A DNA stretch of 64,000 bases from Marsupella aquatica (GCA_973895155.1 OZ316899.1:643573-707572), one strand, 5' to 3'; shown: positions 1 through 51,606, numbered from the stretch's first letter. Made by a program: numbers and translations. Notes: a model not told the origin generated them from the letters alone.

Positions 1-89
1 AAAATGCCCTGCGAGACACTCTCCATCGCTCACTTTGCAATTGATCACTGTCGTGCGCATACACATCGCTACACAACATACATTGCTTG

Positions 90-448
90 TGTCATGCCGA
101 GGGATAATGCCTCTTGTGCACATCGGCATGTCCCTCGCATGCCCGCTAGGTATGTAGTTAGGGCTAGTGTACTACTTGAATTAGTGTCATGTTCTTGTAG
201 CGAGTCTGGGCCGTTCTTGAAGCAAAGGTGTTTGTTAGTGTGATGCCTGGACCCGGTCCTACTTAGGGCATGTTTTTCTTTGCCATTTTTCAGTTCTTCT
301 TGAATCGCTGTTGATAGAGCTCAGACAGTGCTCGTCGGTTCCGTACACGGGATTCACACAGTGATTCGTTAGATGCTCCCGGCCGATCTTGGCATCCTGC
401 CGGTTTTCAATTTGATTTCAGTACAATTGTTTCTCTTACGCCTTTTAT
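90..448 (+). repeat. Terminal repeat A1 (359 bp)
   Basis: Direct repeat of 9532-9877 from tgtcatgccgaggga to ttacgccttttat, with about a dozen substitutions and one 13-bp length difference. Confidence 0.95.
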
Positions 449-2155
449 TCAAGAAGAACTGCCGAGTTGGCGGTGAGGGGAAGAAGATAGAAGACATTCT
501 CATCTCAGTTGCTTATGTCGGTTCAAACAATTTCCGTCGAAGCTAGTGCAATTTCTTTGAGCAACAATGGAGGGACGAGTTGAAATTATGGGTTCAATAT
601 GGTGTTAAGTGTATACTTAACATAAATATACACATAACCATCCCGTTGGAGCCAGACTCTTTCTTCTCGGTTGTATCCGGGGACCCTTTGCTGCTTCCGA
701 CTATGGCTGCTGGCTGCTGACTGCCACAACCTTTTTCGGGCCAATTTTGCGATGTTTTTGCAAGAGGGGCTGTCTGCATAGGGCTGCGCGCCCCTTCTTG
801 GCTGCGCCTCCCTGCGCCCTGCTACCTTCCGGCCTACTACAAGCCATGGGTTGCAGGTTGATGCCTTTACTCTTGCTCGGAGCCCCGTAAAGGGTCGCAC
901 GCCAGGTTTATTGCCGCCTCGCGAGTGTGTTTGTATTGCGCCCTTCTCCCTCTGTGTATACACATCGGGGGCGACAACCTTTCCTTACCGTTTTCTTTTC
1001 CTTTTGCTCGCCGGTACGCGCATAGGGCATCGTGCCCTCCACTCAATTAGGACTTGTTTCTTTCTTTCCCCCTCACCGTTTTCTTTCCTTTCCCCCTGTT
1101 GCCAGCACTTAATAGGGGAGAGGGAGCGAGTACAAGCGGGAGCTGAGAGGGAGAGGGCACGAGGCCCTATGAAGAACTAAGGAGGAGAGGGAGTTCATGT
1201 CGACTCCCCTCGGGAGCCTTGCAAGCATGAGGCCCAACTTACAAGGCATTAGAGGAGGGGGAAGGGAAGCGAAAGGAGGCACGAGGCCCTAGGCAACTTT
1301 AAAGTAGAGGGGGAGGGGGAGTACATTGACTCCCTTCTTTGAGGAGTACTTTCACCAGGGCACGAGGCCCACAGAAGCATTTAAGGAGGGGATTGAGGGG
1401 GAGTTCGTAGCCTCCCTCTTTGGGAGCTCATAAGGAGAAGGGGGGGGGGCGCGAAGCCCTATGCTGCACAACCCGTGCCATTAAGAGGGCTCGTTTTATT
1501 TTTGCCTTGCCTCCTCTCTTTTTGCCTTGCCTTGGGTCCCGTTCTTGCCTCTTTTGGCCTTTCTTGCTTTTTTGTTGTGTGACGATCGACTTGTTGCAGT
1601 TTCTGGGTCCACAATGGGGCCCAGATGTGTATACACATAAGGGTTGGACCCGGTTCACGTTTTTCAGGGCCCATTCTTACCGGATTCCTTTGCTGCGCCG
1701 ACATCATCTGTATACTGGTGTATACACATCAATTTGGCATATACATAGGCAAACGTGAAGGGGGCTAAATTTGCAATTTTAAGGGTCCTTTTTCTCCGGT
1801 GACGGTTTCTCCATGTTTACACATTCTACATATTTCTGTCTCGCATCGTTTGTTTCCTTTGTGGGTTACACTTCCTAGCCTTGGGGTTGCCACACCTTTT
1901 TCTTCTCAACTTCTTTCCCATTGGCACCCCGGGTGAGCATGCAGCATGTCAGCAGAGGAGCCAAGTCGTAGCAGCACATCGCCACCGACACCCAGGTAAC
2001 ATTTACGGAGTGATCCATGACCATTGGTGCCAATTTCATTGGAGTCTCGACAATTTTGACGACGTCCGCAGATAGCAGCAGCACCCACACCACGCAATCC
2101 TTCTGCTACATTTGGCGGTCGCTTCACCACTACTCCAAAGCCTGCTATCACTTCA

Positions 2156-4150
2156 TTGCCATTTACCCCTTCTACATTAGTGGTTGTTCCTGCTTCACCG
2201 ACATACAACATGGATGCCAACCACTCATCTGGCCGCATTGAACGCTTCAGCGGGCGGCCAGGCATTGTTTCTTTGCGTGAGTTCAAATCTACTTTCTACA
2301 CTGTCATTTACAAATTGGAGTTGAAGTATGGCAGCAATTTCACAAATGCTTTTGCATTTAAGCAGCTAGCCAGGTATGTGCACCATGAGCCTTTGGATGT
2401 GTATGAGCAACATTCTCAATGGCTGCTGGCTGTCACACAGATGCCTAACCCTACCTTTGCCAGTGCAATTGTGGCAGCCTCACAATTGGCCTTACAGAAT
2501 GCCATTGCAGCCCATGCTACTGCTCCAGCCACTTCCCCTCCTACTCTAGTTCCTACCACTGCGCCAGTTACTCCCATTGTCTTGGCACAGGCTACATCAG
2601 GCATTTCTCCCACCATTGATTCTCTTGCCTTTGCTGATCCAGTGGCTGAGTTTTTCCAGGTTCTTGAATTGGAATTCCCAATCAAGAGTGCTGACAAAAT
2701 CATGCAGTTGGCCACCTTTGTGAGGCAGCGCGATGAAACCTTGAAGATGATGTATCGCCGGCTTCTCAAGCTGAAGGAGGACACCTAGAGCATCACTGAC
2801 CTGGAAGCTGCTCATCACTATCTTTGCGCATTGGAGGGCACACCAGCTCTCCATTCACAAGTTTTGCAGCAAGTATTCTCAGAGTTTGGAGATAGCTACA
2901 CCCTGCTCAATGTCTATGACATTGCTGAGAAACTTGAGTTGGCCCATGCACATTATGAGGCCAGTATTGCGCGTCCACCGCGATCCAGGTACCAGGTTGT
3001 TGCCCCTACACTGGCCACTCCTTCCCGTGTGCCACAGTATGGTTCCAAAACCAAGCCAGCACATGTTGCTTTCATGCTGCCATCATGCAACTACTGTGAT
3101 AACCCCAATCACAAGGCTAATGAATGTGATATTGTTGCTGAGGACCTATCTTGTGATTTTTGCAGGAAAGTGGGCCACTTGGAGGCAGTTTGTTTTGCCA
3201 AATTCCCAGAGAGGAAGCAGCAACAACAGCAGGCCCCTCATCCTGCTCCTATTTCCACTCCCCCACCAGCTAGGAGGGCTCCTACTGCATCAGTTGCTCC
3301 TCCTTCCAGTGGCAAAGCACCCGGTGCCAACAAATCGCCCAAGCAGCAACAGAAGCAACCAGCTCAGAAGGAGGCTCACAACGCACAGGCAACTCAACTC
3401 CACTCTTTGACTCATGAGGTTGAGTCCCTACGTGCCCAACTTGCCCACATCAAAGGCAAGTCACCTGCCTCTGCTGGTCCTTCTCAACCGGTTGGTCACG
3501 TGCAACCCATCCCTGGCCCAGGCACCACTGGCAATTCAGCATCTCTACCCCGCTCTTTCTATGGCTTGCCATTTGATGCTCATATGGGTGAGTGTGTGTT
3601 GTCCTTTGCTACACAGCCTGGCCTTACAGCAGAATTTTCCAATTCATTTTGCCCTTCCTATTTTGCTTACCAACAGGCCAGTGCTACCGCCCGTATTGCT
3701 CCCACACGCCGCATTGTACAGGCTGATGGTCTTGCTGCCAGTCCTATGACTAGAGCCAGGGGAGCTCGGCCTGTCATGCCCCAATCTTTTCAGCCACTCA
3801 CACTTGCTGAAGAGCGCACCTTGTTGGCGAGGGGGGAGGGAGCTGCAGCTACACCCATTCCACCACCAAGTGTTGCTGACATTTCACAGGGAGTTGTTTC
3901 TCCTGAGCTGCTTGAGCATTTCACCTCCGGTATGGCACAAAGGATTCTTACAACTCCACTTTTCAGTTGCCATGATTTACAGCTGGATGCTAGAGCTGTC
4001 ATGAGAGTGCTAGAGGGCTCATTGCATTCTTCATCAGCCCCTGTGCCACCGGTTCTGGAGGTCCAATCTCATGTACATGCTGGACCTTCTTCTTCTCCAT
4101 TACATGCTTCCACTTGGTTTGGCTATCCCAATACCAATTTCCAGTGGTAG
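2156..4150 (+). pseudogene. gag: gag with two CCHC zinc knuckles
   Basis: ORFs 2156-2788 and 2831-4150 are in the same frame with one TAG at 2786; CNYCDNPNHKANEC and CDFCRKVGHLEAVC are both C-x2-C-x4-H-x4-C. Confidence 0.85.
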
Positions 4151-4700
4151 AGATGACAATAAAGATTGTGTGACCAGAGCTACACTTGATTCTGGTCATG
4201 TTGCTCCATCTTTCCTGGCTGTGCTATTGAGTGGGAAGACCGTGGACACTAACTCCCTTCACAAGGTACCTCATCATTTGCCAAAAGTGGTGCCTAGTGA
4301 CAGGACTTTAGTTTCCACCACCATTGCCATTGTTGACAACAGGAATTCAGCGGTCAAGTTGGAGGGTCACACTCCTCAGGTGGTCATGCTAGACACAGGC
4401 ACTCAACCAGTGATATTGGGCATTTAGTTTGCCAAGAAGATGGGATTGCTGACTGATCATTTACAGCAATCCAGGTGGCACATTCGGACTGCTAGTGGCA
4501 CTGTGGAGGATGTGCTGGGTGAGAGTTCTATTTTACTCACTCTCACTTTTAATGGAGGTACAGATCAGGAATTGCATTTCCCAGTCAGATGTTTGGTTAC
4601 CAATGCCACTACGTATGATGTGCTCATTGGCCAGGAGGCTTTGTTCCCACCAGGTTTTACCATTGACAACTGGCATGAGCATGCATACTACAGAGTTGAT
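4071..4700 (+). pseudogene. pol: pol: aspartic protease domain
   Basis: VMLDTGTQPVILG (D-T-G catalytic motif) followed later by YDVLIGQ; in-frame TAG at 4425. Confidence 0.85.
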
Positions 4701-5060
4701 TGGCACACGGATGGCTCACACTTGGGCTACATTCCACTTGATTTGCATGGTGCCCATACACCTATGGCTCACCACTATGTGTTGAAAGCAGTGCACACAG
4801 CTACCTATGTCAACCACCCATTGCAGGATTGGATTGAGGAGGATGATGATGAGGTGGCTACTGCACATGCTGCTGCACGTATAGCAACACTTTCCAGCAA
4901 CGTGGATCATCAACCAGAGGTGGTACAATGGCTCCAAGCAGCCCATGGACCTTTGGTGGCTGCATTGCGCAAATTTGAGGACCTTGGGCAGCACAATGGC
5001 CAACCAATAGCCCCAATCTTGAGCGCACCAGTTACATGGACTCCTCCTTTAGATGGCCTT

Positions 5061-6010
5061 ACATTGCTTGAGCTTTTTGGTGGCATTTCTACAGGCCTGG
5101 AAGCTCTCCTACAGTCTGGCATGGTGGTGAAGCAGTACATCTATGTGGATATTGATCTAGGTGCAAGGCAAGTGACTGAATCCCATCTGCTGGAATTTTC
5201 AGAGCGATTTCCCCAGCAGTTTCCACATAGTGCATAGAAGTCTGCATTTTCTTTCTTTCCTCCAGATATCTAGCTTGTCCAGCACCGGCACTTAACCCTT
5301 CTTGGCTCCCTTGATTTGATCATAGCTGGTTGGGAATGCCAAGGGTTTTTAGCTGCTGGTCATGGTGCTGGACTGCATGATTCTTGTTCTGGCCTTTTCA
5401 CAACATTGGTTCAGATTCTCACCTGGGCTCAATCCCTTTATCCTGCTGTTGGTTATATCATTGAGAATACTCCATCTCAGTTTGACCAGCGTCCACAGGT
5501 CAAAGAGGATTTCAGTGTGGTCCAGCACTACTTGGGACCACCCCTTCTCATTGATGCAGTGCACTGTGGTTCTTATGCACATCATCTTTGTAACTTTTGG
5601 ACTAACCTTGCACCACCTTCCTTGTTGGAGTTAGCTTTTCACCACACATCCAGGGACACTAACCTCATAGTGGACCAGATTTTGGATCCTGATAGTTCTT
5701 GCCAACCAATTACACGGCAAGAGCCAACACCTTGGTATCCAGCCAATACCATTGGACAGCCCCGTGCTGCTTGGCCTACATTTGTATCCTTTCCAGGTGC
5801 ACATGCCTTTCAGGGTGATGGTCCTGGCCTGGTTTATTGACATTCTACCGGTACTTGGGATGAACCTAGTCCTGAGGAGAGAGAACGGGCTATGGGCTTC
5901 CAATCCGGTACTACAGGCCACACCCATATCACCAGGCTGGTCAGGAATGCTTTACTTGGTAGGGTAATGGATCTTAATGCTCTCACTTGGCTTCTGGTCA
6001 CTTGCATCCT
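5061..6010 (+). pseudogene. pol-embedded C5 cytosine DNA methyltransferase domain
   Basis: One reading frame holds motif I LELFGGISTG, II YVDID, IV IAGWECQG (catalytic Cys), VI YIIEN, VIII GSYAH..FWTN, IX EPSPEERERAMGF and X RNALLG; stops at 5235, 5271 and 5838. Confidence 0.88.
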
Positions 6011-6427
6011 TTTTCAGATGTACATTCATCCAGCATCTGGAGTTCCAGCTCTACCACTCCATGGTGCTACATGGCATCCAGACTAGGTGCACTTACCTCT
6101 ATTCAACACTCACCGCTTCAGTCCAAGTGTTGGGGGGGAGGAGGTCCCTTGTAACGTGGCTGACAATTTTTCTGAGTTTCATGGTGTAGACCAACTCAAA
6201 TCAGCAGGTACAACAGGCCTTGGAGAGGTCTCATCACCTTATCAGCAGCATGCTAGCAGCTTGGACAGTGGAGAGGCTGGCACTTCTGGCTTTTCAAGCA
6301 CGAGTACATCAGGTCCTATTACTAGTGTTGCCAACTACACATTCATCATGGGCAACCACCTGAGTAAAAGACAGAAGGACCAGCTGCTGAATTTGCTTCT
6401 CAAGCATGAGAACTGTTTGCTTTCTCT

Positions 6428-7750
6428 ATGAAGGACTTGGGTAAGTGCAAGACTATGCAGTTCTCCATTGAGTTGGCTGATGAAACACCTATCTTCAGAC
6501 GGAGACACCGTTTGAGTAAGCATGAGTGGCAGCTGGTGGATGAAAGGTGCCAAGAGCTCTATGAAACTGGTCTTATTCAGCCATCTACATCAGATTTTGC
6601 AGCAGCTACAGTGATGCCAGCAAAGAAGGATTCTAGTGGATTGTGGACAAAGAAGCGCATGTGTGGGGACTACAGGCCACTGAACCTGGTCACACCCCAG
6701 GACAGGTACCCCATGCCACGGCCAGAGGAGCTATTTGATAGCATTGGAGACTCAAACATCTTCACTCTTGTGGATCTAAGGCAAGGCTTTAACCAGATTT
6801 TGCTGCTTGCAAAGGACCGCAAGAAAACAGCTTTCCATGGTAGTAACCAACTATGGGAGTGGTTGGTGATGCCATTTGGCTTGAAGAATGCGCCCATATT
6901 CTTTCAAAGAGTCACGGACCAGGTTCTTCAAGGTGCTGAGTTTCTGAAATGCTACATTGATGATGTGTGGGTCCACAGCAAAGGATTTGACCAGCATCTA
7001 CTTGACCTTGAAGAGCTATTCATGAGGCTTAAGAAGGTGAACCTAAAGATACACCCCAAGAAGTGTGAATTTGCTGTCAGATCAATAGTATACCTTGGGC
7101 ACCGCATTCTTCCAAATGGAACCATGGCTCACTGGCCAAGGTGGTATCCATCTTGCAAATGCCCACTCCTACTGATGTTCACACTCTTAGGAGCTTTATT
7201 GGGTTGTGCAATTACTACCGGATCTACATAAAAGATTTCAATACCATTGCACATCCATTGTATGCTTTGTTGAAAAAGAATGTGACTTGGACATGGAGTA
7301 CAGATGCTGAGGCAGCATTTGCCACTTTGAAGGAGAAGCTCTCAGAATACCCGGTATTGAGAAGACCTGATTTCAGCAAGGTCTTTGTGCTACACACAGA
7401 TTGGAGTGCCCTTGGGATTGGTGCCATTCTGGGCCAGCATGATGAGGAAGGTAAAGAGTACGTCATTGCCTATGCATCCAGGAGCAACAATCAGGCAGAG
7501 AGTCATTATTCTTTGTATGAGGGTGAATGCCTTGCTGTTGTGTGGGCTGTCATACATTACAGGCCCTACCTCTATGGGACCAGGTTTGTCCTCTACACCG
7601 ACCACCAGCCCTTGAAGTGGTTGATGACCAACGACAAGCTTATTGGCAAGCTTGCTCGTTGGGCGCTCATACTCCAGGAGTATGATTTTGAGGTAATTCA
7701 TAGGCCTGATGTGACACATCAAAATGCTGACACTATGCCCCGCAGCCCTT
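6428..7750 (+). pseudogene. pol: pol: Ty3/gypsy reverse transcriptase and RNase H
   Basis: RMCGDYRPLN, DRYPMP, MPFGLKNAP, YIDDV, YLGH; RNase H LHTDWS..GIGAIL, YEGECLA, TDHQPL; frameshift near 7140. Confidence 0.95.
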
Positions 7751-8039
7751 TGATTGCCTCTGATGATTCCTCAGATGCACGACAGGATTTTGACCAGGTT
7801 TCCATCTTGCCTACATTTCATGCATCTACCTATCTTGCTTTGCTGCCATGCTATGTTGTTGACCAACCTATGGTGGACATATGGGAGGACAGCGACACTC
7901 TGAGATTTATGCAGGATGGGGAGTACCCCACCCATGTTACTGCTGCCCAGAGAGACCAAATTCAGCAAAGGTCCAAGCGCTACTCGTGGAAGGGAGATCA
8001 TCTTGTGCGCTGCTTGCCAGACAGGGAAGTGGTGGTTCC

Positions 8040-9140
8040 ACCCATTCATGAGAGGGTTGGCCTTATCCGTAAGGTACATTCTGAGCTTGGTCATTTTGGT
8101 GTTAAGAGGACTTATAGCCTCTTGGTCCCCCATTATCATTGGCGAGGCATGCATGGCCAGGTTCGAGATGTTATTGCCCGGTGTGAGTAGTGTGATAGGG
8201 TAAGGACTTCTTTCACATCTCGGCAACCCACACTTCATCCACTCCCTATTTAGGGCATGTTTTATCGTTGGTCATGTGATTTGGCTGGAGAATTACCCCT
8301 CACATCTTGGGGTAATCTCTACATCATGATCATGATAGAGCATTTCTCCAAGTGGATAGAACTTGTGGCATTGCCAGATAAGACCTCCCGTAGCACCAGC
8401 CAGGCATTCCTGCAACAAGTTCTCAGCCGCTTTGGAGCTTGTGCAAAATGTCTCACTGACCAGGGCTCAAAGTTTAGAGGAGAGTTCCAGGAGCTACTTG
8501 ATCAGGCCCTCATTGATCATCGCCGGACATCACGAGATCACCCACAGGCAGATGGTTTGGCAGAACGCATGGTTCAGACAGGTCTCCGGAAGATTTGCCT
8601 CACCAAAAACAAGGAGGATTGGGACCTGGCCTTACCCTACATTGCCATGGGGTATAGGATGTCTAGACATGCATCATTGTCTAACTTTTCTCCCTACTTC
8701 TTGTTGTTTGGTCGTCACCCAGTTCCACCTTCCGCTATTGCTGCTCACATGCTTCAGGTGGTGGACTTGGATTCAACTGTGACTTGGTCTGATGTGATCT
8801 ATGAGAGGGCTGCCCTATTCAGGAGGGTTATGCCCATGGCCATGGAGAATTTGGCCATTGCACAGCATAGAGACACACTGCGTTATGCACACACACAAGG
8901 GGGCACTTTTCAGCCCAAGGTCAGGAAGTTTGATGTGGGAGATTTTGTGTACTTGCAATGGCAAGCTAACAACACCCTGGACACCTCTACCAGTCGTACC
9001 ATTCTCAGGGTTAAGGCTATTCAACCGTCTGGAGTGCTAGAGTTACAAGGGGCAGATGGGCGCACAATTGCTGACAATGCCAAGAATTGTGCCCCTTGTC
9101 ATCTACCTAACCTGGATCCCACCATTGTGACTTCTACTTG
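8040..9140 (+). pseudogene. pol: pol: DDE integrase
   Basis: HHCC zinc finger (HSELGH..C..C), core WSCDLAG / TDQG / GLAERM, then FGRHP and a C-terminal VGDFVYL segment; TAG stops at 8188 and 8251. Confidence 0.92.
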
Positions 9141-9149
9141 GATTCCACC

Positions 9150-9314
9150 TGTGGACTACCCTTGCAAAGTGTGTTTGCGAATTGATGATGCTGACCAGAT
9201 GCTGCTTTGTGATAATTGCAATGGAGGATACCATCTTTTCTGCCTTTGGCCTGAACTTACCCAGGTGCCAGAAGGGTTATGGTTTGCCCTTCCTGTGCTC
9301 CACGTGCTACCTGA
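9150..9314 (+). pseudogene. PHD finger at the integrase C-terminus
   Basis: CKVC...LLCDNCNGGYHLFCL...PEGLWF; restoring one deleted T in tggtttgccc gives the closing CPSC and TGA at 9312, completing C4HC3. Confidence 0.88.
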
Positions 9315-9346
9315 CTTTTCTTCAGCCCTCCTTTTGGCTGTGGTTT

Positions 9347-9353
9347 GGGGGGG
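9347..9353 (+). promoter_or_regulatory. Putative polypurine tract (G7) directly before repeat B1
   Basis: ggggggg immediately precedes atacagagg, the start of B1. Confidence 0.5.
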
Positions 9354-9529
9354 ATACAGAGGTTTACACCTCCACTACGTACATACCACCTCAGTTGCTT
9401 TTTCTTGGCACTTGTGAATGTCATTGGACTTTTTCTAAGGATGTTGGTTGCTATCAGCTTGCACATATGCATTGCCGGTGACTTGTATGTTTTTCATACA
9501 CTATGGCTACGATACTATATGTCATGACA
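9354..9529 (+). repeat. Terminal repeat B1 (176 bp)
   Basis: Direct repeat of 9878-10053 with about 6-7 differences; ends tgtcatgaca. Confidence 0.95.
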
Positions 9530-9531
9530 GC

Positions 9532-9877
9532 TGTCATGCCGAGGGACAGTGCCTCTTGTGCACATCGGCATGTCCCTCGCATGCCCACTAGGTATGTAGT
9601 TAGGGCTAGTGTACTACTTGAGTTAGTGTCATGTTCTTGTAGCGAGTCTAGGCCGTTCTTGAAGCAAAGGTGTTTGTTAGTGTGATGCCTGGACTCGATC
9701 CTACTTAGAACCCATTTTTCTGTTCTTCTTGAATCGCTGTTGATAGAGCTCAAACAGTGCTCGTCGGTTCCGTACACGGGATTCACACAGTGATTCGTTA
9801 GATGCTCCCGACCAATCTTGGCATCCTGCCGGTTTTCAATTCGATTTCAGTACAATTGTTTCTCTTACGCCTTTTAT
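9532..9877 (+). repeat. Terminal repeat A2 (346 bp)
   Basis: Copy of 90-448; starts TG two bases (GC) after the CA end of B1. Confidence 0.95.
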
Positions 9878-10053
9878 ATACAGAGGTTTACACCTCCACT
9901 ACGTACATACCACCTCAGTTGCTTTTTCTTGGCACTTGTGAATGTGATTGGACTTTTTCTAAGGATGTTGGTTGCTAGCAGCTTGCACATATGCATTGCC
10001 GGTGACTTGTATGTTTTCGATACACTATGGCTACGATACTATATATCACGACA
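9878..10053 (+). repeat. Terminal repeat B2 (176 bp)
   Basis: Copy of 9354-9529; ends CA and is followed by the TSD CTTG. Confidence 0.95.
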
Positions 10054-10482
10054 CTTGTCACATACATCCAGACATAGTCACACTGCCACGTCACAAACAC
10101 AAGAGAATGGAATACAAGTGGACTCATGTCCACACATGTCCAAAACCCACAATAACCTTCACAACAATCGGAACAATGATTGACGCCAACAATAGGCACT
10201 CAATCCCGTCCGATCCAATCACACACATATGTCGAGCCAACACACCTTGCACTCAAGGAATCCACGCTATAGAGAGAGAGCTTTTAGCCACGATAGCCAC
10301 CACACAAGCTCTCCTCTCCAAGGCTCAACATTGAAAGATAACCTTTCAATGCCTCACAAGAGAGAACTACCCTCTCACACAAACCTAATGGAACCTTATC
10401 GGCTCATATAGCACATATACCAAACATACGGATCTAGATAGTACGATACACTCTAACACTACCTAGAATGGTGTGACATCAC

Positions 10483-10870: not shown

Positions 10871-10939
10871 TCGGAAACATTCAGTAAAGGTATTGCAAAG
10901 GGAATTTATTCGCAAAATGGGTCACAAAAGATACTAAGG

Positions 10940-11940
10940 GACTTTGAAGGTAATTTAGGAGAAAAAAGGGGATGGGACAAGTGAGGGAGGATGGAGGGAC
11001 AAGGGTAGGAGGGAGAAAGAGCCAATTTTGGGAGTGCTGGTTTAAGGAAAGAGGGAGAAAGGGGTTGGGACAAGGAAAGGAGGGAGGAAGGAGGAGGGTG
11101 GGCCAATTTAGGGAAGGCCGGTATATAGGTAAGAGGGAGAAAGGGGGTGGGATGCAAGGAAACAAGTGAGGAAAGTGGGTATAGGCAAGGTAAGAGGGAT
11201 AAATTAAGGAGCCAGGGTGGGACAAGGAAGGGAGGGAGGGAAAAGGAAACGACAAAGGAAGGAAGAGGGTTGGCCAATTAATATAGGTAAGAGGGAGAAA
11301 GGGTTTGGGATAAGGAAAGGAGGGAGGGAAAAGGAAAGGAGGGAGGAAGGAGGAGGGTTGGCCAATTAATTTAGGTAAGAGAGAGAAAGGGTTTGGGACA
11401 AGGAAAGGAGGGAGGGAGGGAGGGAAAAGGAAAAGAGGGAGGAAGGAGGAGGGTTGACCAATTAATTTAGCTAAGAGGGAGAAAGGGTTTGGTACAAGGA
11501 AAGGAGGGAGGGAGGAGTTTGGGTATATCTAGGTAAGAGGAAGAAAGTAAGGGTCCAGGTTGGGACAAGGAAGCAAGGGAAGGGGAAGGAGGAGGGTGGG
11601 CCATGAATTTAGGGTACAAGGATGAGGGGGTGGGACAAGGAAAGGATGGGGCAGGTTGGAGGGACAAGTTAGGGAGGGCCAGTATAGGTACTTAAGAGGG
11701 ATTAAGGGGATGGGACAAGGAAAGGAGGGAGGGACGGGACAAGTTAGGGAGGGTCTGTTTAGGTAAGAGGGAGAAAGGGTTTTGGACAAGGAAAGGAGAC
11801 GGAGGGATGGAGGGAGAATGTATATAATTATATACATGAGGGAGAAACTAAGGAGCCAGGGTTTAGGTTAAGAGAGGGAAAAGGAAAGGGGGATTTAGGG
11901 AGAAAGGAGGTGTGTCAAGGAAAGGAGGAAGGATTAAAGT
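10940..11940. repeat. Strongly purine-skewed low-complexity region with imperfect repeats
   Basis: Recurrent ggacaaggaaaggagggagg and gttggccaattaat..ggtaagagggagaaaggg units; very few pyrimidines on the + strand. Confidence 0.8.
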
Positions 11941-12073
11941 ACAAGTAGCATGAGTTATCATAACACAAAATCTAGCAAAAGGTGTGGAGGCATGGAGTTT
12001 AGGGTTTAGAGTATAGCAATGACATTTCAAAATGACATGATCAATTCACAAATGCACATGAATATATCTCCAG

Positions 12074-13375: not shown

Positions 13376-16300
13376 ATGGCAATGGAGAAACTATTATTCC
13401 CAGCACTAAGAATTGACGGGAAGAACTATAATGATTGGACAATAGACGTGGAGGTTAACCTCACCGCAAAAAGAATCCCAGAAACAATACATACCGACAT
13501 TGGGGTGGACCAATACCAGAAGGCCCAAGCATTAGTCCTACTAAGACACCACTTAATAGAACCATTAAAACATCAATATAAGACGATATACAACCCAAGG
13601 CTCCTATGGGATGCATTGAAAGAGAGATTTGAACACATAACAACTATAAACTTACCAAATGCGCTACAAGCATGGGTAACCTTAAGAGTGCAAGATTTCA
13701 AAACGGTAGACTTATACAACAGCGAGATGTTCCGCATCTCGAACGAACTCCAAATGTGCGGTGAACCAGTGAATGATAAACAACAAATCGAAAAGACACT
13801 AGCAACATTTCACCCTACAAACTTAGTAATCTCAAACCAGTATAGAAACATGGCATTCACTAAATACTCAGCACTAATAGCACACATGCTCTTGGCAGAA
13901 CAAAACTCAATCCTACTCATGACAAATGCAAAGGATAGACCCCCGGGTACACTCCCAATACCTGCCACCACTGAGACGAACTTAATTATAAATGAGAAAC
14001 TGAGAGAAGCTAACTTGACCACACCTTATGATAGAAATACAAGTAAATTCAGGGGGAGAGGCTCATATAGGGGAAGAGGAATGAAGGGAGGACGATCGAA
14101 CTACTCCTATAGAGGAGGACCCAGAGGAGGATTCAGCAACCGCGGAAGGGGCCGTGGAAGAAACAATTTCCCCGGAAGGACCACATGGAAACGAGGCCGC
14201 AACGACTACCAAGAGAAGCCAAGAAACAACTCAAACAGCTCAATCACATGCTTCAGGTGCGGTACAAAAGGTCACACCAAAAAGGTATGCCATGCCCCAG
14301 CCCATCTTGTGAAACTCTACAAACAAAGTTTAGATGGATCAAAACTTGAAACCCATGGAGTTTACCTGGAATCACCTGAGATTATACCAGAAATTTATAT
14401 GGTAGACCCCCCACCTGAGCTAGAGGATATAGACGTATGCATTATAGACAGCGGTACATCACACACCATCCTCCGAAATAGAAAATATTTCCATGAAATT
14501 ATCCCTTCCCAAAGACAAATAATCACTATAACCGGAGAAAGCCAAATAGAAGAAGGTCACGGAAGAGCCACCTTAACTCTCCCTGGAGGCACAATAATTA
14601 GATGCCCATCAGCCATATATGCCCCCAAAGCAAGAAGGAACCTTCTGAGTTTCCAAGATATTAGAGCCAACAACTACCATATCCAAACAAACATCCAAAA
14701 CTTACAAGAAGTACTGCAAATAACATCACACTCACCAGGAGGGATAATCATTAGAGAAACCATCTCGACCCACCCTTCAGGGTTCTACATCACCCAAAAC
14801 CAATGTTATAACCTAGGGGTCGAATCCAAAGATATCACCGAGACATGGCACATGAGATTGGGACACCCAGGAACCAGCATGTTCCATAGGATAGTCAACA
14901 ACTCAACAGGAATACCAAAGACCTGTCACCCAAGGTCATTCCAAAAACCATGCATTGCCTGCTCCCAGGGCAAGATGGTTACCGCCCCCTCCATCCCAAA
15001 AACCGAAAACCATATCCCCGCATTCCTTGAGAGACTCCATGCGGACGTATGTGGACCAATCGACCCACCAAGTGGACCATTTCGATACTTCTTGGTAGTG
15101 ATAGACGCCAGTTCTAAGTGGTCCAGAGTATCCTTATTATCAACCCGCAACCTAGTCTTCCCCAGAATCCTTACACACATCTTAAGACTAAGGTCACAAT
15201 TCCGTGAAAATCCAATTAGAACCCTTAGAACTGATGGAGCTGGTGAATTCACTTCTAGAACCTTTGATGAATTCTGCACAATAAATGGAATTGACTCCCA
15301 ACATAATGTACCCCATGTCCACTTCCAGAATGGACTAGCGGAGTCACTTATTAAACGTATACAACAGATTGCTAGACCACTATTAATGCAATCATCACTC
15401 CCAACATCAGCATGGGGCCATGCAGTATTACATGCTGCAACCCTACTCCTTTATAGACCATCAGCCTTTAACAGCAACACACCTTATCACCTAGCTTTCG
15501 GGCAACCACCAAATATCTCACACCTAAGAATATTTGGATGCCAAGTCCTCATCCCCATACTAGGTCCTCATAGAACCAAAATGGGACCACAACGGAGGAA
15601 AGGCATCTATGTAGGATTTGACTCAACATCTATCATACGATACATGGAACCTACAACCACTGACATATTCAAAGCCCGTTTCAGCGATTGCCATTTCTAT
15701 GAAAACATTTTCCCAACCATTAACACGCAAGAGGGAAAACATAAGTCATACACCAAAACACTCACATGGCAAGCTTCCCCGGCACTTTGCCCAGATCCTC
15801 GAACTAACCAAACTGAACTAGAAGTCAATAGGATACTTCAATTAACCAAGATCATGGAGTCCTTACCCGACTCATTTGCTAAAGGCTACACACAAGTTTA
15901 TGGAACTGACTATGCCCTGACATACTCACCTGTCATGGACGTCACCACATACCGCTATTTGATAGCATTTGCTATACACAACAAACTGCTAATGCAACAA
16001 ATGGATGTTGTTACCGCTTACCTTTATGGTAAACTGGACAACGTGATTTATATGGAAGCCCCGCCTGAACTCATTGAGAGAGTAAACTTCCATGCAAATT
16101 CAAAACATAATCCACATATGCACAATGATAATAGTGCAAAATCATTTGACTATATGAACAAATTGGTACTCCACAATGCTTCCAAAGCAATTGCATTACA
16201 AGAACCTAGAAAGGATCATAAGGCAACCGGAGCAAAGACCCGGTATGCAGTTCAAGTCCTTAGTTCCCTTTACGGACTCAAACAGAGTGGATGTACATGG

Positions 16301-17464
16301 TACCACAGATTCAAAAATCAAATGATATCCATGGGATATAAGAATTCTGAAATAGCTCCTTGCTTATTTATAAAGCATGAAGGACCTGAATTCATAATCA
16401 TCGCTATATATGTTGATGACCTCAACCTCCTTGGTACGAAAAAGATGATGAATGAGTCAATGCAAACACTAAAAAGCGTATTTGAAATGAGAGACATGGG
16501 CAGAACTTCTTATTGCATTGGACTCCAATTTGAACATTTGGAAAAAGGCATTCTTTTACACCAAACTACTTACACAAAGAAAATATTACAACAATTCAGA
16601 ATGAATATGTTGAAGCCTGTTAAATCCCCCATGGACATCCGTACCCTTGATAAGGATAAGGATATGTTTAGAAAAAGAGAAGAATTCGAACCTATATTAG
16701 GTTCAGATATGCCATACCTTTCGGCTATCGGTGCTCTTATGTTTTTATCTAATCAAACAAGACCTGACATAGCATTTTCTGTCAACCTACTGGCGAGACA
16801 TAGTTCTCAACCCACTATAAGACATTGGAACGGGCTAAAACGGATTTTCAGATACCTTAATGGTACATCCGACCTCGGCCTATATTTTCCTAATGAGGAT
16901 AACCATAAGTTGAAAGGATATGTTGACGCCGGATACCTTTCTGATCCACATGACGGTAGATCTCAAACAGGATATATATTCTTAATGGGATCAACACCAA
17001 TATCTTGGAGAAGTACTAAGCAAACACTTGCAACCACTTCTTCAAACCATTCAGAAATTATTGCCCTTTATGAGGCTACTAGAGAATGTTTATGGCTAAG
17101 GCAAGTAATAGACCATATTCTTATTCAAACAGGTAAACAAAACTTAACCATGCCTACAACTATATTTGAAGACAATATGTCATGCATCACTCAAATCAAA
17201 TCAGGATTTATAAAAGGTGAACGCACAAAACATATTGCACCCAAGTTCTTTTTCTCACATGAACAACAAGGAAAAGACATCGACATACAATGGATTTCAG
17301 GAGACAAGAACCTGGCCGACATCCTAACAAAATCTCTACCCCCATCTACTCATAGAACACTAACTCACCTCTTGGGGATGCGAAGTCTTAAGAAACTGAT
17401 GCAGGATTCTAACATTGAGGGGGAGAATGGATTTTTCTACAACAACACTATTGAAGAAGAATGA
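13376..17464 (+). CDS. gag-pol: Copia Gag-Pol polyprotein (1362 aa, open, but RT N-terminus deleted in frame)
   Basis: CFRCGTKGHTKKVC knuckle, IIDSGTSHT protease, WHMRLGHP..CIAC zinc finger, HADVCGP/RTDGAGE/GLAES integrase, LYGLKQSG and YVDD RT, YVDAGY and NLADILTK RNase H. Confidence 0.95.
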   Translation: MAMEKLLFPALRIDGKNYNDWTIDVEVNLTAKRIPETIHTDIGVDQYQKAQALVLLRHHLIEPLKHQYKTIYNPRLLWDALKERFEHITTINLPNALQAWVTLRVQDFKTVDLYNSEMFRISNELQMCGEPVNDKQQIEKTLATFHPTNLVISNQYRNMAFTKYSALIAHMLLAEQNSILLMTNAKDRPPGTLPIPATTETNLIINEKLREANLTTPYDRNTSKFRGRGSYRGRGMKGGRSNYSYRGGPRGGFSNRGRGRGRNNFPGRTTWKRGRNDYQEKPRNNSNSSITCFRCGTKGHTKKVCHAPAHLVKLYKQSLDGSKLETHGVYLESPEIIPEIYMVDPPPELEDIDVCIIDSGTSHTILRNRKYFHEIIPSQRQIITITGESQIEEGHGRATLTLPGGTIIRCPSAIYAPKARRNLLSFQDIRANNYHIQTNIQNLQEVLQITSHSPGGIIIRETISTHPSGFYITQNQCYNLGVESKDITETWHMRLGHPGTSMFHRIVNNSTGIPKTCHPRSFQKPCIACSQGKMVTAPSIPKTENHIPAFLERLHADVCGPIDPPSGPFRYFLVVIDASSKWSRVSLLSTRNLVFPRILTHILRLRSQFRENPIRTLRTDGAGEFTSRTFDEFCTINGIDSQHNVPHVHFQNGLAESLIKRIQQIARPLLMQSSLPTSAWGHAVLHAATLLLYRPSAFNSNTPYHLAFGQPPNISHLRIFGCQVLIPILGPHRTKMGPQRRKGIYVGFDSTSIIRYMEPTTTDIFKARFSDCHFYENIFPTINTQEGKHKSYTKTLTWQASPALCPDPRTNQTELEVNRILQLTKIMESLPDSFAKGYTQVYGTDYALTYSPVMDVTTYRYLIAFAIHNKLLMQQMDVVTAYLYGKLDNVIYMEAPPELIERVNFHANSKHNPHMHNDNSAKSFDYMNKLVLHNASKAIALQEPRKDHKATGAKTRYAVQVLSSLYGLKQSGCTWYHRFKNQMISMGYKNSEIAPCLFIKHEGPEFIIIAIYVDDLNLLGTKKMMNESMQTLKSVFEMRDMGRTSYCIGLQFEHLEKGILLHQTTYTKKILQQFRMNMLKPVKSPMDIRTLDKDKDMFRKREEFEPILGSDMPYLSAIGALMFLSNQTRPDIAFSVNLLARHSSQPTIRHWNGLKRIFRYLNGTSDLGLYFPNEDNHKLKGYVDAGYLSDPHDGRSQTGYIFLMGSTPISWRSTKQTLATTSSNHSEIIALYEATRECLWLRQVIDHILIQTGKQNLTMPTTIFEDNMSCITQIKSGFIKGERTKHIAPKFFFSHEQQGKDIDIQWISGDKNLADILTKSLPPSTHRTLTHLLGMRSLKKLMQDSNIEGENGFFYNNTIEEE

Positions 17465-23717: not shown

Positions 23718-24662
23718 GTGCCTCGTAGACCCCCACCTCCTCTGGTTGATAATGCTATGTGGTTGGAAGGGTTTCTAGCAAGGGCTAGTGAGTTGCTTGC
23801 ATCTGCCCTTGCCCATCCACCGCTTAGTCCCCCTGCTCCTATCCCCACACATGCGCATGTAGACAAGGATGCACCGGTCTCTCGACCCGAGGAAATGGAT
23901 ACTAGGGTCCTACATACACGTTCACGGTCTTGCAGACCTAGACGACAATATGAACCGGTGGAGCAGGTAGAGAATCGGGAGGAGGCGTTACGTAGTGATC
24001 GACTACCCGGAAATGGAGATTATAATTGTGTTGAGGGCCGGTTTGGACTATCTTATCTCACTGGTAGGGCTGCTGATGTTTGGAAGGACTTTTCTCCTAG
24101 TCTCTTCAAATTTCCAGATTTCATTCATACTGATGAACCAGTTGACATATGGGGTCGGCCTTGGATAGTGAAGGCATCCTCTATTGGTGCTGATATAGGA
24201 TATGGTCTATATGCTTTGGAGGACATTGTGGTCCCTCCAAAGCCATGGAGACGTGGATATGATGGAGAGCACCTTTTCCCTTACATTGGGGCGGTATATA
24301 ATGCAAAGAGTTGGAAGACTTTATTGCGTCAGCACCCAAGCTGGGGGGTGTACGCCTTGAGGATGGACTCAGACCCAGATGAGGTTTTGACTAGGCCGTG
24401 GCATTGTAGGATGATTGATGGTGACCCTATTCGGAATGGTAATTTAGCAGGGTACATCAATAGTACAACGGGTAGAGGTAGAGATTTTGAGGCTAATGTA
24501 GAGTGGATCCAAATTTTTGGCCCTCCTAGAGATCCGTATTTCGTGAAACATATGAATGACCATATCATGACAATAGCCATTAGGACTATTAGAGCCGGTG
24601 AGGAGATATTGTGTGAGTATGAGTGGGACGCCCCAAAATTGTCCCTACATTGCCGTCCATGA
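23718..24662 (+). CDS. SET-domain (lysine methyltransferase-like) exon inside the CACTA
   Basis: Phase-0 acceptor aaatag|GTG; motifs IGYGLYALEDI, FPYIG, IDG..GNLAGYIN, ANV and AIRTIRAGEEILCEY. Confidence 0.85.
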   Translation: MPRRPPPPLVDNAMWLEGFLARASELLASALAHPPLSPPAPIPTHAHVDKDAPVSRPEEMDTRVLHTRSRSCRPRRQYEPVEQVENREEALRSDRLPGNGDYNCVEGRFGLSYLTGRAADVWKDFSPSLFKFPDFIHTDEPVDIWGRPWIVKASSIGADIGYGLYALEDIVVPPKPWRRGYDGEHLFPYIGAVYNAKSWKTLLRQHPSWGVYALRMDSDPDEVLTRPWHCRMIDGDPIRNGNLAGYINSTTGRGRDFEANVEWIQIFGPPRDPYFVKHMNDHIMTIAIRTIRAGEEILCEYEWDAPKLSLHCRP

Positions 24663-24779: not shown

Positions 24780-27700
24780 TTGATGTTGTATGATAGAATA
24801 AATATGTACAATCTGATATTGGGGTCATATCACGAGCTATGCGACAACACATTGTTGAGGCCATGGTGGCCAACCATGCCTGGGCATGATGGAGGGATGC
24901 AGGAGGATGATGTACAACATGAGGGTGATAATCCTACTCAAGCACATTTGGATGAGGAGAGGGCCATGGATGAGCTCATGGACCAATTTTATGATGATGA
25001 TGTTGATATTGGTATGGAGGATATGGGTACAACTGATGACAACACCACTCATCCAGGACCTTCTAGGGGGGGACAGAACAAGGATTGGGAGGAGGCTCAA
25101 CGTCATGCACGTACTCGCATATTTGAGGGTAGCACCTTATCTCGGCTCTCCGCAATAATGTTGTTGCTGAATGTGCAGCAAAGACATGGGGCCAACAACC
25201 TACTTTTGGATGATGTTTTTTGTACCTTGCATGATCGTATTTTGCCACCAAGCAATACCATGCCAGCCTCTTGGAAGGAGGCAAAACAAGTGTTGAAGTC
25301 CATTGGCCTCAAGTATGTAGTGATACATGCATGTGTGAATGATTGCATTCTTTTTAGGGGGGAGCATGAGAATGCAACTGCATGTCCTAAGTGTGAGAAG
25401 CCGCACTACCGTGATGACATGTTGACAGGGAAGGTGCCTCAAAAGGTTATGCGATACTTTCCTCTCATCCCCCGATTGCGACATCAGTACCGTTGTGCAG
25501 AGTTAGCTGAGTACATGGTATGGCACTCAAAGAATCATTTTGATATGGCTACGAACTCTAGTGCCATGCGGATGATGGTTGACTCTCCTGCCAATCAATT
25601 TGTTGAGGGCAGATGGGGGAGTTCAGCACTGAACCACGACATGTTTGACTTGGCTTGGCAGCTGATGGTATCAGCCCTTTTGCATTGGCAGGTAAAGCAA
25701 AACCATATTCAGTATGGCCAGTAGTTTGGCTAACTACAATATCCCTCCATGGATGGCCATGAAGAAAGGTCATTTATTGCTCTCCATGATCATCCCGAGT
25801 CCTAAGCAAGTAAAAAAGATTGACATCTACTTGCAACCATTGATTGATGAGCTTTTGCAACTGTGGAGAGTCCGAGTGGATTGTTATGACGGATGTCGCA
25901 ATACAGGAGGTGTACCTCGTGCGTTTACCCTCAAGGCCATCCTTATGTGGACCATGCATGACCTACCAAGTATGACCTGATAAACCTTAGCTTATTTCCT
26001 TGATGTACTACTTTAAATTTAGTGTGCATTAACCTTATTTCATAATTGGCTGGTTGTATATGGGCTTGGTACAGGGTTTGGGTATATCTCTGGATTGCAA
26101 ACATCAGGCTATCGAGCTTGCCCTTCATGCGGACCAGATTTGGAGGGAGTGGCAAGACGCAAGTCAAGTACTTTGCGTAAGATAGTTTACATTGGTCATA
26201 CCAAATATCTTCCAGCAGACCATCCTTGGAGGAGTGATCATTTCTTGTATGACACTGATGAGGGCCAACCTGATACTCGTCCTCAACCTCAGCGAAAGGA
26301 TCCAACATATTGGAGAGAGGTATGGGAGAGAGTTCAAGACCCTGATGATCCATTACAGTTTCTCCGATGTGGCATGACCCGTTTATCTGCATTGTCATAG
26401 TTGCCATATTGGTCAGAGATGCCCATTAATCACTTGTTGGATGCGATGCACATTGAGGGAAATGTGGGGAGATCATTGATTCGTCATCTATATGGGGAGA
26501 AGAACCACAACTGGAGAGAAAGTTGTGAGGAGATGGGGATACATGGTCTTTTGGGTTTTTGGCCATCTTTGGACCCCCCTGGTGATCCCCCTAGCATCCA
26601 TCCTCCTTGGGTTTTGACCAGGGCAGAGCGCATAGAGTTTTGCAGACGGATTGGGTCAATGAGGTTTTCCACAGGTTATGGTGCCAATCTTTGTAAGGCA
26701 TTTGGGGGGGGATGATTCTCCAAAATGGCCATCGTACCTGAAAACACATGATTATCATCGATTACTAGAATATGTCATTCCAGTTGCGATTATTGGATTG
26801 GGTAGTGAGGAACTTCGTGATGCTCTTTGGTCATTGGGCAAGTTTTTGAGATGGGTATGTCAGAAGGAGGTACTAGAGGATGACATTGCTGCAATGGAAA
26901 TATTTGGAGTAGAGGTTGTTTGCAAGTTGGAGAAGGCACTTCCACCCTCATTCTTTGATGGTCAGGTTCATTTCCTCATACATTTAGTGCATGAGGTAGC
27001 AATTGCAGGCCCGATACATTGTCGATGGATGTATTGGGTAGAGCGTTACATGGGGGTGATGAAGTCATATGTCTCTAATCGGGCTAGGGTGGAAGGTAGT
27101 ATTGCAGAGCGTCATCTTGGAGCACAGAGTATGTTTTATTGTACAAACATAGTTGCCACACTAGATCCAAGGGCACCTAGGGGATGGATAGATGAGGCGG
27201 CATGAGAGGCAGACTATGAGGATGATAGACTCACTGGGGCATCAGGAGAGCGTGGCTTAGGCTCAGCAGAGCATTTGCAACTTACAACATTTATGTTGTA
27301 TAACTCACCAGAGGTTGTAGGGGAGTGGACAACATTTTATGAGGAGGAGAAGCAAAATAGTCGATGGCCACGGTTGTTTCCCAAGTTTCACCCATACATG
27401 AAATCAAAGTTGTTAGAAGTGGATGCCTTGGTGGGTACCGAAGACCGTATATTACATTACCCACAAGTGACTGATAAGCTTTGTACCTTGGTTCATGGTC
27501 CACTACTTAAAGTCACGACTCGGATGTCAATGTGGTCAAAGGGGAGACATTTCCGTGTGGAACGACTTGATAAGAAGAGAGCAGCTACACAAGATTGTGG
27601 GGTGATGGGTTGGTTCACCCAGGATTCCCAAAGTAGCACGTCGGACATGAACCCCATTCGCTCCACCGTGGCCCATTATGGGAAGATTGATGAGATCCTG

Positions 27701-50829: not shown

Positions 50830-51606
50830 CAAGTTTTCCTCGATGATGAGGGATTGTTTGGCATAGTGCACAGTGCTTCGGTTGCCCACTCCGTAGTACT
50901 TTGTGACAGTCTCAATTACGAAGAGACCAATTGGGTGCTGAAAGACACCTTTTTCATCTGGAACGCCACACCCACCTTCGACTTCACGACTCGAAAGCGG
51001 GTAAGTCTAATAGATTTAACTCCATTCTTGTCTTATGTTCTTTCGGTGACTTGTACTCAGAAAGACTCATCACTGACTTTGTTCTGTACGTCCAGAGTGA
51101 ATATCTCAAGCTGGACCTTTGGGGATTTAAATCGTCTGCCGAGGTATGCCCAAAGGATGACGTGAAGCCAATCAGTGTCGAGCTTGATATGAAGTTGAGG
51201 AACGGGCTAACTAACTATACAACGGGTCAGAATGAGACCATTGATGATTTTGGTGGCACCTTGTCTCCAGCTACACTCCAATGTATAATAGAATATACAA
51301 CTAAGCCAGGGGGAACTGTGGTCACGTTCAATGCACACTTCGGGGCTATCTTTAAGGCTGGTGAGAACTGTGGGCGGATGGTCTTTGGGACCGAATCCTA
51401 TCCGTACTTCAAATCTTATGCGGAAGACACGATGACAGAGTTCGTTGGAGTGCCTCTAACGGAGCAAGAGGAGGCAGTGGATCGTCGAAAATCCAATCCA
51501 GAAAAGCGCAAGAAGAAAAAGCCTTCATGTGAGTTTACTACCGTTTCCCTTCAATGATTTTAATATTGTCCCATAGTATTTCAGCGGACTCTCCGAGATG
51601 GCTCTC

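Follow-up and report, generated by a model that had tools for sequence, protein, structure and literature searches.

A 64,000-nt stretch of the Marsupella aquatica genome (GCA_973895155.1, OZ316899.1:643573–707572), which is referred to as the window, was analyzed with a focus on the retroelement that occupies positions 90–10053 near its left end. An earlier note on this DNA had described the unit as a Ty3/gypsy element with a DDE integrase that carries split direct repeats in the order A...B-A-B in place of paired long terminal repeats (LTRs). Self-comparison of the region gave the same layout and the same outer ends, with a single A at the left end and B-A-B at the right end. The repeats and the flanking duplications were located as follows.

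86–89 (+ strand): target-site duplication, left copy, CTTG; direct reading, same as 10054–10057
90–448 (+ strand): repeat A1, the sole repeat at the left end; 92.5% identity to A2 including one 13-nt indel, E 6e-154 in self-comparison
9354–9529 (+ strand): repeat B1, putative 5′ third of the LTR (start of the unique 3′ region, U3), ending ...CATGACA; 96.6% identity to B2, E 2e-81 in self-comparison
9532–9877 (+ strand): repeat A2; self-comparison
9878–10053 (+ strand): repeat B2, the right terminus, ending ...CACGACA; self-comparison and direct reading
10054–10057 (+ strand): target-site duplication, right copy, CTTG; direct reading

On direct reading, A1 opened with TGTCATGCC and the flank preceding it closed on CTTG, and the last bases of B2, CACGACA, were followed by CTTG again. 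The termini of the unit are TG...CA and are enclosed by the 4-bp duplication, as the earlier note had read them. The duplication lies at 86–89 and 10054–10057, and the termini form a 7-nt terminal inverted repeat. No further copies of A, B, or the interior were found within the 64-kb window by self-comparison.

The element codes for gag, protease, a Dnmt3-like methyltransferase, reverse transcriptase, RNase H, and an integrase of the HHCC/DD35E type whose C-terminus bears a PHD finger. The leader and the coding segments were placed at the following positions.

462–2155 (+ strand): untranslated leader with GGCACGAGGCCC-type short repeats at 1156–1391; repeat families in self-comparison
2156–4150 (+ strand): gag, frame 2, with one stop at 2786–2788 and two CCHC knuckles at about 3083–3190; open reading frames (ORFs) and motif reading
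4071–4427 (+ strand): aspartic protease, frame 3, active-site motif LDTGT near 4380–4424; motif reading
5037–5840 (+ strand): Dnmt3-like C5 cytosine methyltransferase, frame 3, stops at 5235–5237 and 5838–5840; motifs and a relative
6428–7231 (+ strand): reverse transcriptase, frame 2; RVT_1, E 5e-28
7294–7683 (+ strand): RNase H of Ty3/gypsy type, frame 1; RT_RNaseH, E 2e-38, and RT_RNaseH_2, E 1e-32
8041–8544 (+ strand): integrase, HHCC zinc domain and DD35E core; Integrase_H2C2 and rve, residues read in translation
9163–9285 (+ strand): PHD finger at the integrase C-terminus, with the last Cys pair lost here; PF00628, E 4e-9

The domain order found with Pfam along 6428–8544 was RVT_1, RT_RNaseH_2 together with RT_RNaseH, Integrase_H2C2, and rve, with the protease motif upstream. 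RVT_1 was found in the ORF at 6428–7228; RT_RNaseH, RT_RNaseH_2, and Integrase_H2C2 in that at 7141–8187; and rve and PHD in that at 8257–9414. The D..D-35-E residues were intact in the translation, and in-frame stops were present at 8188–8190, within the CxxC of the HHCC domain, and at 8251–8253. No ORF on either strand gave a Phage_integrase match in Pfam, and all the coding space was accounted for. These results agree with the earlier note, which had reported an HHCC-DDE integrase and no tyrosine recombinase.

The methyltransferase, protease, and gag pieces of the window copy had no Pfam match even at E up to 5, and they were assigned by motif and by comparison with relatives. The methyltransferase, which lies between the protease and the reverse transcriptase, contains the motifs ELFGGISTG, WECQGF, and IENTP. 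The segment 5316–5837 was 63% identical to an ORF of a relative (L030:5355–6221) that matches PF00145 DNA_methylase with an E-value of 7.9e-5, above the curated cutoff, and has DNMT3A/3B as its best PDB matches. Equivalent protease ORFs in relatives showed weak Pfam matches to Asp_protease_2 and gag-asp_proteas. The gag knuckles, for which the zf-CCHC match in Pfam is weak, read as CNYCDNPNHKANEC and CDFCRKVGHLEAVC, and the window gag was collinear with that of locus L066 in tblastx. Frames shift in the order 2-3-2-1 along the coding region, at least six internal stops are present, and all the reading frames are broken. The window copy is a dead, decayed element. This state, the Dnmt3-like domain (about 5040–5840), and the PHD finger had been overlooked in the earlier note. 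In the 1.7-kb leader, the ORFs had no Pfam match on either strand, and three to four short repeats beginning GGCACGAGGCCC were observed at 1156–1391.

Relatives were sought with the integrase-PHD ORF, which yielded 496 representative relatives below 1e-30, and loci were taken from metagenomes (80), Calypogeia fissa (2), Klebsormidium nitens (2), and ENA metagenomes (2). The nearest integrase-PHD protein was that of the liverwort C. fissa, with 87% amino-acid identity but about 75% DNA identity. Bryophyte-associated metagenome contigs showed 70–84% identity, other relatives were found in Sphagnum and in Haematococcus (about 50%), and the K. nitens proteins were 49–53% identical to that of the window (E 1e-106 to 1e-153). 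In the integrase tree, the window paired with the C. fissa locus L004, separate from a large star-like metagenome clade, and the DD35E integrase was kept throughout the family. The window and its bryophyte relatives have the methyltransferase between the protease and the reverse transcriptase. A DNA_methylase domain was observed between RNase H and integrase in integrase-PHD relatives that are more distant (e.g. P0012, 1707 aa). Because its position differs among the relatives, this accessory domain moved or was gained more than once. Two Haematococcus lacustris loci (L001 and L002), found via the representatives with 50% identity, had neither DNA similarity nor B-A-B after the integrase and were set aside, as was C. 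fissa locus L003, a knot of nested repeats that was not interpretable.

The split-repeat layout was found to be a trait of the family. B-A-B lay directly 3′ of the integrase in 40 of the 67 classifiable metagenome loci, with B of 160–185 nt and A of 280–390 nt. It was also found after the integrase in C. fissa L004 and in K. nitens L085, where B is 73 nt and the B pair is 100% identical. The B-A-B 3′ end was seen across four diverged lineages. Seven copies, including that of the window, were read end to end as A-interior-B-A-B, and five of them had a perfect 4-bp duplication of their own; this was the check on independent insertions that the earlier note had proposed. In a second frequent form (27/67 loci), a single B was followed by flanking DNA, and the full-length cases were A-interior-B without any repeats. 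The duplications of the individual copies were as follows.

Window, A-interior-B-A-B: CTTG
L037, A-interior-B-A-B: ATGT
L065, A-interior-B-A-B: ATAA
L080, A-interior-B-A-B: TGTG
L084, A-interior-B-A-B: ACAT
L029, A-interior-B-A-B: 3/4 bases
L018, A-interior-B-A-B: no target duplication
L047, A-interior-B: TTTT
L061, A-interior-B: GTAT
L030, A-interior-B: CCAA
L087, A-interior-B: GATT
L058, A-interior-B: 3/4 bases
L036, A-interior-B: no target duplication
L054, A-interior-B: truncated at both ends

A perfect 4-bp duplication was present in 9 of the 14 copies and 3/4 bases in two more; for the 8 perfect duplications among 13 copies counted before L087 was added, the probability of a chance occurrence is about 7e-17. 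In the 14 copies with both ends read, B adjoined the 5′ A in none, and the opposite permutation, A-B-A-interior-B, was found in none. Ordinary paired LTRs (B+A or A+B at both ends), which the earlier note had named as the finding that would speak against its description, were looked for among the loci surveyed, and no such copy was found. The B-A-B and single-B forms were intermixed on the integrase tree (18 changes versus about 21 with shuffled labels), which indicates that the single-B form is not a separately propagating lineage. Divergence between B1 and B2 within copies was of the same order as that between A1 and A2, and most copies are old, with repeat identities of about 80–96%.

Inverted copies of A were observed near the expected A1 position at L004:1662–2230, together with an inverted B, and at L066:1780–2076; they were 99% and 91% identical to their own A2, respectively. 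A DIRS1-like inverted-repeat variant was at first suspected for these loci. In L004, however, gag and the leader are absent, coding similarity to the window does not begin until the protease-methyltransferase region, and no target duplication flanks the inverted unit; in L066, the unit lies about 600–900 bp off the expected place. Both were provisionally treated as neighboring or rearranged copies, such as inversions, but may also represent a real variant.

The signals for priming and the sequence at the B1-A2 junction were located in the window at the following positions.

291–303 (+ strand): self-primer and putative transcript 5′ end, CAGTTCTTCTTGA; perfect reverse complement of 449–461
449–461 (+ strand): primer-binding site for Tf1-like self-priming, TCAAGAAGAACTG, abutting the 3′ end of A1; complementarity to 291–303
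9347–9353 (+ strand): polypurine tract (G7) abutting B1 on its 5′ side; direct reading
9523–9538 (no strand assigned): perfect 16-bp palindrome CATGACA-GC-TGTCATG at the B1-A2 junction; direct reading

A G-run, rarely with one other base inside, abuts B1 in all 34 metagenome-clade B-A-B loci with a placeable B-start motif, and such a run also abuts B1 in C. fissa and, as AGGAGGGG, in K. nitens. The first base of B is fixed: the metagenome clade (34 loci) reads ATACATGAG here, the window ATACAGAGG, and C. fissa ATAATGGGG, and in K. nitens ATAGTGCGG follows AGGAGGGG. On the other side of the interior, the 10–13 nt right after A1 are the perfect reverse complement of a site 120–160 nt within A, with compensatory changes between lineages as listed below.

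Window: after A1 TCAAGAAGAACTG, inside A CAGTTCTTCTTGA
Most metagenome copies: after A1 TCTAGAAAAACT, inside A AGTTTTTCTAGA
L080: after A1 TCTAGAAAAATT, inside A AATTTTTCTAGA
L084: after A1 TAGAAAAATT, inside A AATTTTTCTA

By our own estimate, the chance of finding a 13-mer complement inside A1 is about 5e-6. A transfer RNA (tRNA)-type primer site, TGGCGGTGAGGGG at 467–479, was not conserved in relatives and was dropped for the self-priming site, and no tRNA-type TGG site was found at the post-A1 position in the relatives. In the metagenome clade, TAAAAGG occurs about 30 nt upstream of the putative transcript start.

These positions suggest that the transcript starts inside A and that the right end of the LTR is the end of A. 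The polypurine run 5′ of B1 and the self-priming site 3′ of A1 argue that the LTR made by reverse transcription would be B+A and that the complementary DNA (cDNA) would have the form B-A-interior-B-A. A1 would then be the 3′ two-thirds of this LTR, comprising a U3 part at 90–290 and the repeated and unique 5′ regions (R-U5) at 291–448, with the split placed at 291 because of the self-primer match there. The primer site and the polypurine tract define the B+A LTR and not the integrated termini. Only the transcript of A-interior-B-A-B would hold all that another cycle requires: R-U5, the primer site, the polypurine tract, B, and, from A, its U3 part with R. B2 and the 5′ portion of A1 would be by-products.

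The two termini of the element correspond to the two halves of the B1-A2 palindrome, in which GC separates B1 from A2. The junction consensus was CA(C/T)GACA-NN-TGTCATGC in 33 non-redundant loci from four lineages, and the spacer was 2 nt long in all 33. The spacer was GC in 16 of these loci and AC, GT, AT, AA, or TA in the others. A first impression that the spacer is hypervariable was given up after this census, which points to an ancestral GC, with AC, GT, and AT as transition derivatives of it. The K. nitens junction, GACA-GC-TGTCATGCC, was identical to that of the window. Retroviral integrases of foamy virus and HIV-1 cut the palindromic LTR-LTR junction of 2-LTR circles after each CA (PMC1180852, PMC1905944). 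The palindrome of this family would likewise be an intact attachment site at which the integrase cleaves. A cut after each CA would produce CA-3′OH ends and 5′ overhangs of 2 nt. Such ends are what strand transfer normally uses as its substrate, and they would fit the 4-bp duplications.

Several smaller features were noted around this site. Two to three copies of a GTCACGACA-like motif lie within roughly the final 40 nt of B (e.g. L058:11245–11294; window 9500–9529), and CATG is repeated within about the first 35 nt of A; these repeated motifs are possibly multiple integrase-binding sites. The bases after B2 at 10054–10061 of the window (CTTGTCAC) resemble the spacer and the start of A at 9530–9538 (GCTGTCAT), and the same holds for the flank of L004 (GCTGTGAG). 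This resemblance hints that insertion may favor targets like the element's own attachment site, but the pattern was absent from the other duplications.

The A2-B2 joint behaved differently from the B1-A2 junction. In the window, the joint at 9877/9878 is precise. Beside the primer site, the end of A1 was AAT in 8 of 8 copies. Among 29 non-redundant copies, the joint was precise in 12; one AT of the AAT-AT microhomology was missing in 8; extra bases corresponding to the first bases of the primer site were present in 3 (two with +T and one with +TC); and 6 showed other states, including a copy with a loss of 3 nt from A and 5 nt from B. Length variation occurred in at least 12 of 29 copies at A2-B2 versus 0 of 33 at B1-A2 (Fisher p 2e-5), and the variation at the A2 end also differed from that at the A1 end (Fisher p 0.004). 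The precise and minus-2 classes did not cluster on the tree, with 6 changes versus 6.6 for shuffled labels, and the scattering of the classes indicates that the state of the joint is not inherited. In C. fissa, two A-B joints within 99%-identical sequence differed by a 2-nt insert exactly at the joint. The evidence that A2-B2 is a fresh end-joining scar, remade in each cycle, is good but not decisive.

We consider it likely that this streptophyte Ty3/gypsy lineage retains the signals of an ordinary LTR, with LTR = B+A, and integrates at the internal palindrome via joined cDNA ends. The observations behind the model are the anatomy of the element, which recurs in relatives, its target duplications, the placement of priming sites that covary between lineages, a conserved palindrome, and length variation found solely at A2-B2. 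The minus strand would be self-primed as in Tf1, just 3′ of A, by the 5′ end of a transcript begun inside A; plus-strand synthesis would start at the G-run just 5′ of B; and reverse transcription would produce a linear B-A-interior-B-A. The integrase would ignore the outer cDNA ends and cut CATGACA-GC-TGTCATG inside the LTR after each CA, leaving recessed CA-3′OH ends, and insertion would take place with a 4-bp stagger. The outer cDNA ends would be joined before or after cutting, as in a 2-LTR circle, leaving the A2-B2 joint as the scar. Opening of the palindrome in the 5′ LTR would give A-interior-B-A-B, and A-interior-B may arise through the palindromes of the left and right LTRs together, from an opened 1-LTR circle, or by later recombination between B1 and B2. 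The earlier note had proposed an LTR of composition B+A opened within one LTR, and the polypurine run, the covarying self-priming site, the palindrome at B1-A2, and the length variation restricted to A2-B2 support this proposal, in which a circle would be the intermediate. We give about even weight to the broader view that the attachment site of a DDE integrase lineage has shifted from the ends of the LTR to an internal palindrome, that this lineage needs cDNA end joining to make a replication-competent copy, and that split repeats follow from the internal site and not from tyrosine recombinases.

Some observations do not sit easily with integration through joined cDNA ends. A randomly opened 2-LTR circle should also yield A-B-A-interior-B, yet this form was found in 0 of 14 copies. 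A kinetic bias, with the 5′ LTR becoming double-stranded first, is a possible but purely speculative cause of this asymmetry. The A-interior-B copies could stem from later recombination and not from integration. At L063:11114–12861, three copies of B were observed in a B-A-B-A-B array with an additional insert in its first A. The array could stem from unequal recombination or from multi-LTR intermediates, and it shows that such events take place and that the repeat number can rise. In L065, the complement of the primer site was not recovered at the expected place. Part of the joint variation at A2-B2 could be later mutation, since most copies are old.

The one-sided permutation is the main argument for a different scheme, in which reverse transcription would make the whole A-interior-B-A-B in the manner of DIRS and PAT elements, with B1-A2 as a bridging template of the kind proposed for PAT and Ngaro, and the DDE integrase would insert this linear product by its TG...CA ends, involving neither a circle nor end joining. 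Such templated replication would account naturally for the single permutation; the layout is the same as the split direct repeats of PAT and Ngaro, and TG...CA ends with 4-bp duplications suit a linear integrase substrate. However, the bases before A2 are not purine-rich and those after B contain no primer site, so that the signals needed are missing there, and the clear priming signals bracket the B+A LTR instead. Templated replication also predicts an A2-B2 joint as uniform as B1-A2, whereas A2-B2 varies in length and its variants are not inherited on the tree. We therefore regard this scheme as unlikely. It is still less probable, in our estimation, that A-interior-B is the only primary product, formed when both LTR palindromes of a linear cDNA are cut, and that B-A-B arises later by chromosomal tandem duplication or unequal crossing-over. 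That form is common (27/67) and has duplications of its own (TTTT, GTAT, CCAA, and GATT), the two forms are intermixed on the integrase tree, and the L063 array fits such a process. However, transcripts of an A-interior-B copy lack both the U3 part of A and a 3′ R, so that such copies could not sustain the lineage. B-A-B occurs in four diverged lineages with A2-B2 always at the A and B ends defined by priming, which random duplication would not produce, and the comparable divergence of the B1/B2 and A1/A2 pairs indicates that both pairs date to the insertion.

A tyrosine recombinase that acts in trans or was overlooked, as in PAT, Ngaro, and DIRS elements, appears very improbable. Elsewhere, split direct repeats are a feature of tyrosine-recombinase elements (PMC5890265), but in this family the ORFs of neither strand contain a Phage_integrase domain, there is no spare coding space, DD35E is conserved family-wide, and the 4-bp duplications and TG...CA ends are integrase signatures. 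A one-off rearrangement, nested insertion, or assembly artifact of a paired-LTR gypsy element might be suspected from the single, degenerate copy in the window; with about 40 loci in unrelated assemblies, from three named or sampled hosts, that share the structure and have their own flanks and duplications, and with no paired-LTR copy found, this explanation can practically be dismissed.

The earlier note knew of no described family that combines these features, but such a combination has been published. De Mendoza et al. 2018 (Nat Commun 9:1341; PMC5890265, Fig. 4c legend) reported gypsy domains and DIRS-like repeats for KnitGypsy-Dnmt3 of K. nitens. The main text and legends of that paper devote one sentence to the repeats; they mention neither priming sites nor the palindrome, and neither target duplications nor the form without repeats. 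Our literature search for gypsy elements with split direct repeats found no paper beyond it. The window element resembles KnitGypsy-Dnmt3 in its homologous integrase-PHD protein, Dnmt3-like domain, A...B-A-B layout, and attachment sequence; the K. nitens locus, on contigs that cover the integrase end, reads purine run, B, GACA-GC-TGTCATGCC at the start of A, and B, with the attachment sequence as in the window. It differs in that its closest kin are liverwort- and bryophyte-associated and in that B is 176 nt here versus 73 nt in K. nitens. These comparisons suggest that the window element is a bryophyte-type member of the KnitGypsy-Dnmt3 kind, whose layout was already known but little characterized. 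The mechanistic picture is new as far as our literature search reached.

The element shares with Ty3/gypsy elements the order of pol domains, the DDE integrase, the TG...CA ends with a target duplication, and the primer site with a polypurine tract, but it does not have two collinear LTRs. With PAT, Ngaro, and TOC-type elements, it shares the A1-interior-B1-A2-B2 repeats, always in the same orientation; it differs from them in having a DD35E integrase, a protease, TG...CA ends, and 4-bp duplications. DIRS-order elements have a tyrosine recombinase, without a DDE integrase or a protease, and make no target duplication; of the traits of the DIRS, PAT, and Ngaro group, the window element has the split repeats A1...B1-A2-B2 but neither the tyrosine recombinase nor the absence of a target duplication. 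TOC1 has been classed as a non-autonomous DIRS element (PMC9940879), and some DIRS elements also carry a methyltransferase domain (PMC5890265). A primer site of 10–13 nt right after the LTR and complementary to the element's own (here putative) transcript start is a feature in common with Tf1, sushi, and Tcn1 elements, and the Tcn1 clade of mosses and club mosses is predicted to self-prime (PMC6317226). Those elements have paired LTRs and a chromodomain, whereas this family is permuted and has a PHD finger on its integrase. Retroviral 2-LTR circles offer the same symmetric ...CA-spacer-TG... palindrome, whose cutting turns a circle into an integration-competent linear form. In retroviruses, however, the palindrome is made by LTR-end joining and serves a side pathway at most, whereas here it is a permanent part of the LTR interior, with a spacer of 2 nt, and is apparently the sole site used. 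A PHD finger is also present in Gypsy-7a_cRei of Chlamydomonas, which has a left and a right LTR according to its figure legend.

Split direct repeats have been regarded as a tyrosine-recombinase signature, and retroviral DNA circles as a dead end. This family, which is abundant and old enough to extend from Klebsormidium to liverworts, joins a classical integrase, priming signals, and target duplications to a permuted insertion, and its sequences show signs of an internal palindromic attachment site and of cDNA with joined ends. If the broader view given above is true, the lineage would either serve as a living model for the transition from gypsy to DIRS elements or represent a striking case of convergence. 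It would also illustrate concretely how the DIRS/PAT/Ngaro architecture might originate. The use of circle-junction-like palindromes as a normal in vivo substrate of integrase would be testable in a non-pathogenic system. For annotation, tools based on LTR pairs would pair A1 with A2 and find no duplication, and the A-interior-B copies offer no LTR pair. Elements of this kind would therefore be mis-called or missed, which may explain why a survey of plant LTR elements (PMC6317226) makes no mention of a methyltransferase or PHD domain.

Other features were observed in the rest of the window. A tract of about 1.1 kb at 10900–12000, which begins some 0.9 kb downstream of the element, consists of degenerate purine-rich repeats with units of about 30–105 nt rich in GGGAGG and AAGG, and it showed strong GC and AT skew. 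Two neighboring ORFs of equal length (314 aa) at 23718–24662 and 24780–25724 (+ strand), the first with a weak SET-domain match, are maybe a tandem duplicate or a piece of another repeat. Long ORFs of 332–634 aa at 33574–40578 (− strand) and 45689–55368 (+ strand) had no Pfam match and possibly represent more repeats. A 452-aa ORF at 60723–62081 (− strand) gave a strong DUF7869 match (E 3e-39) and is probably part of another mobile element. At 13376–17464 (+ strand), an unbroken 1362-aa ORF encodes a Ty1/copia polyprotein with gag, a protease-like beta-barrel, integrase, and RVT_2; its nearest database proteins are just 51–61% identical, and it possibly belongs to a young or active element.

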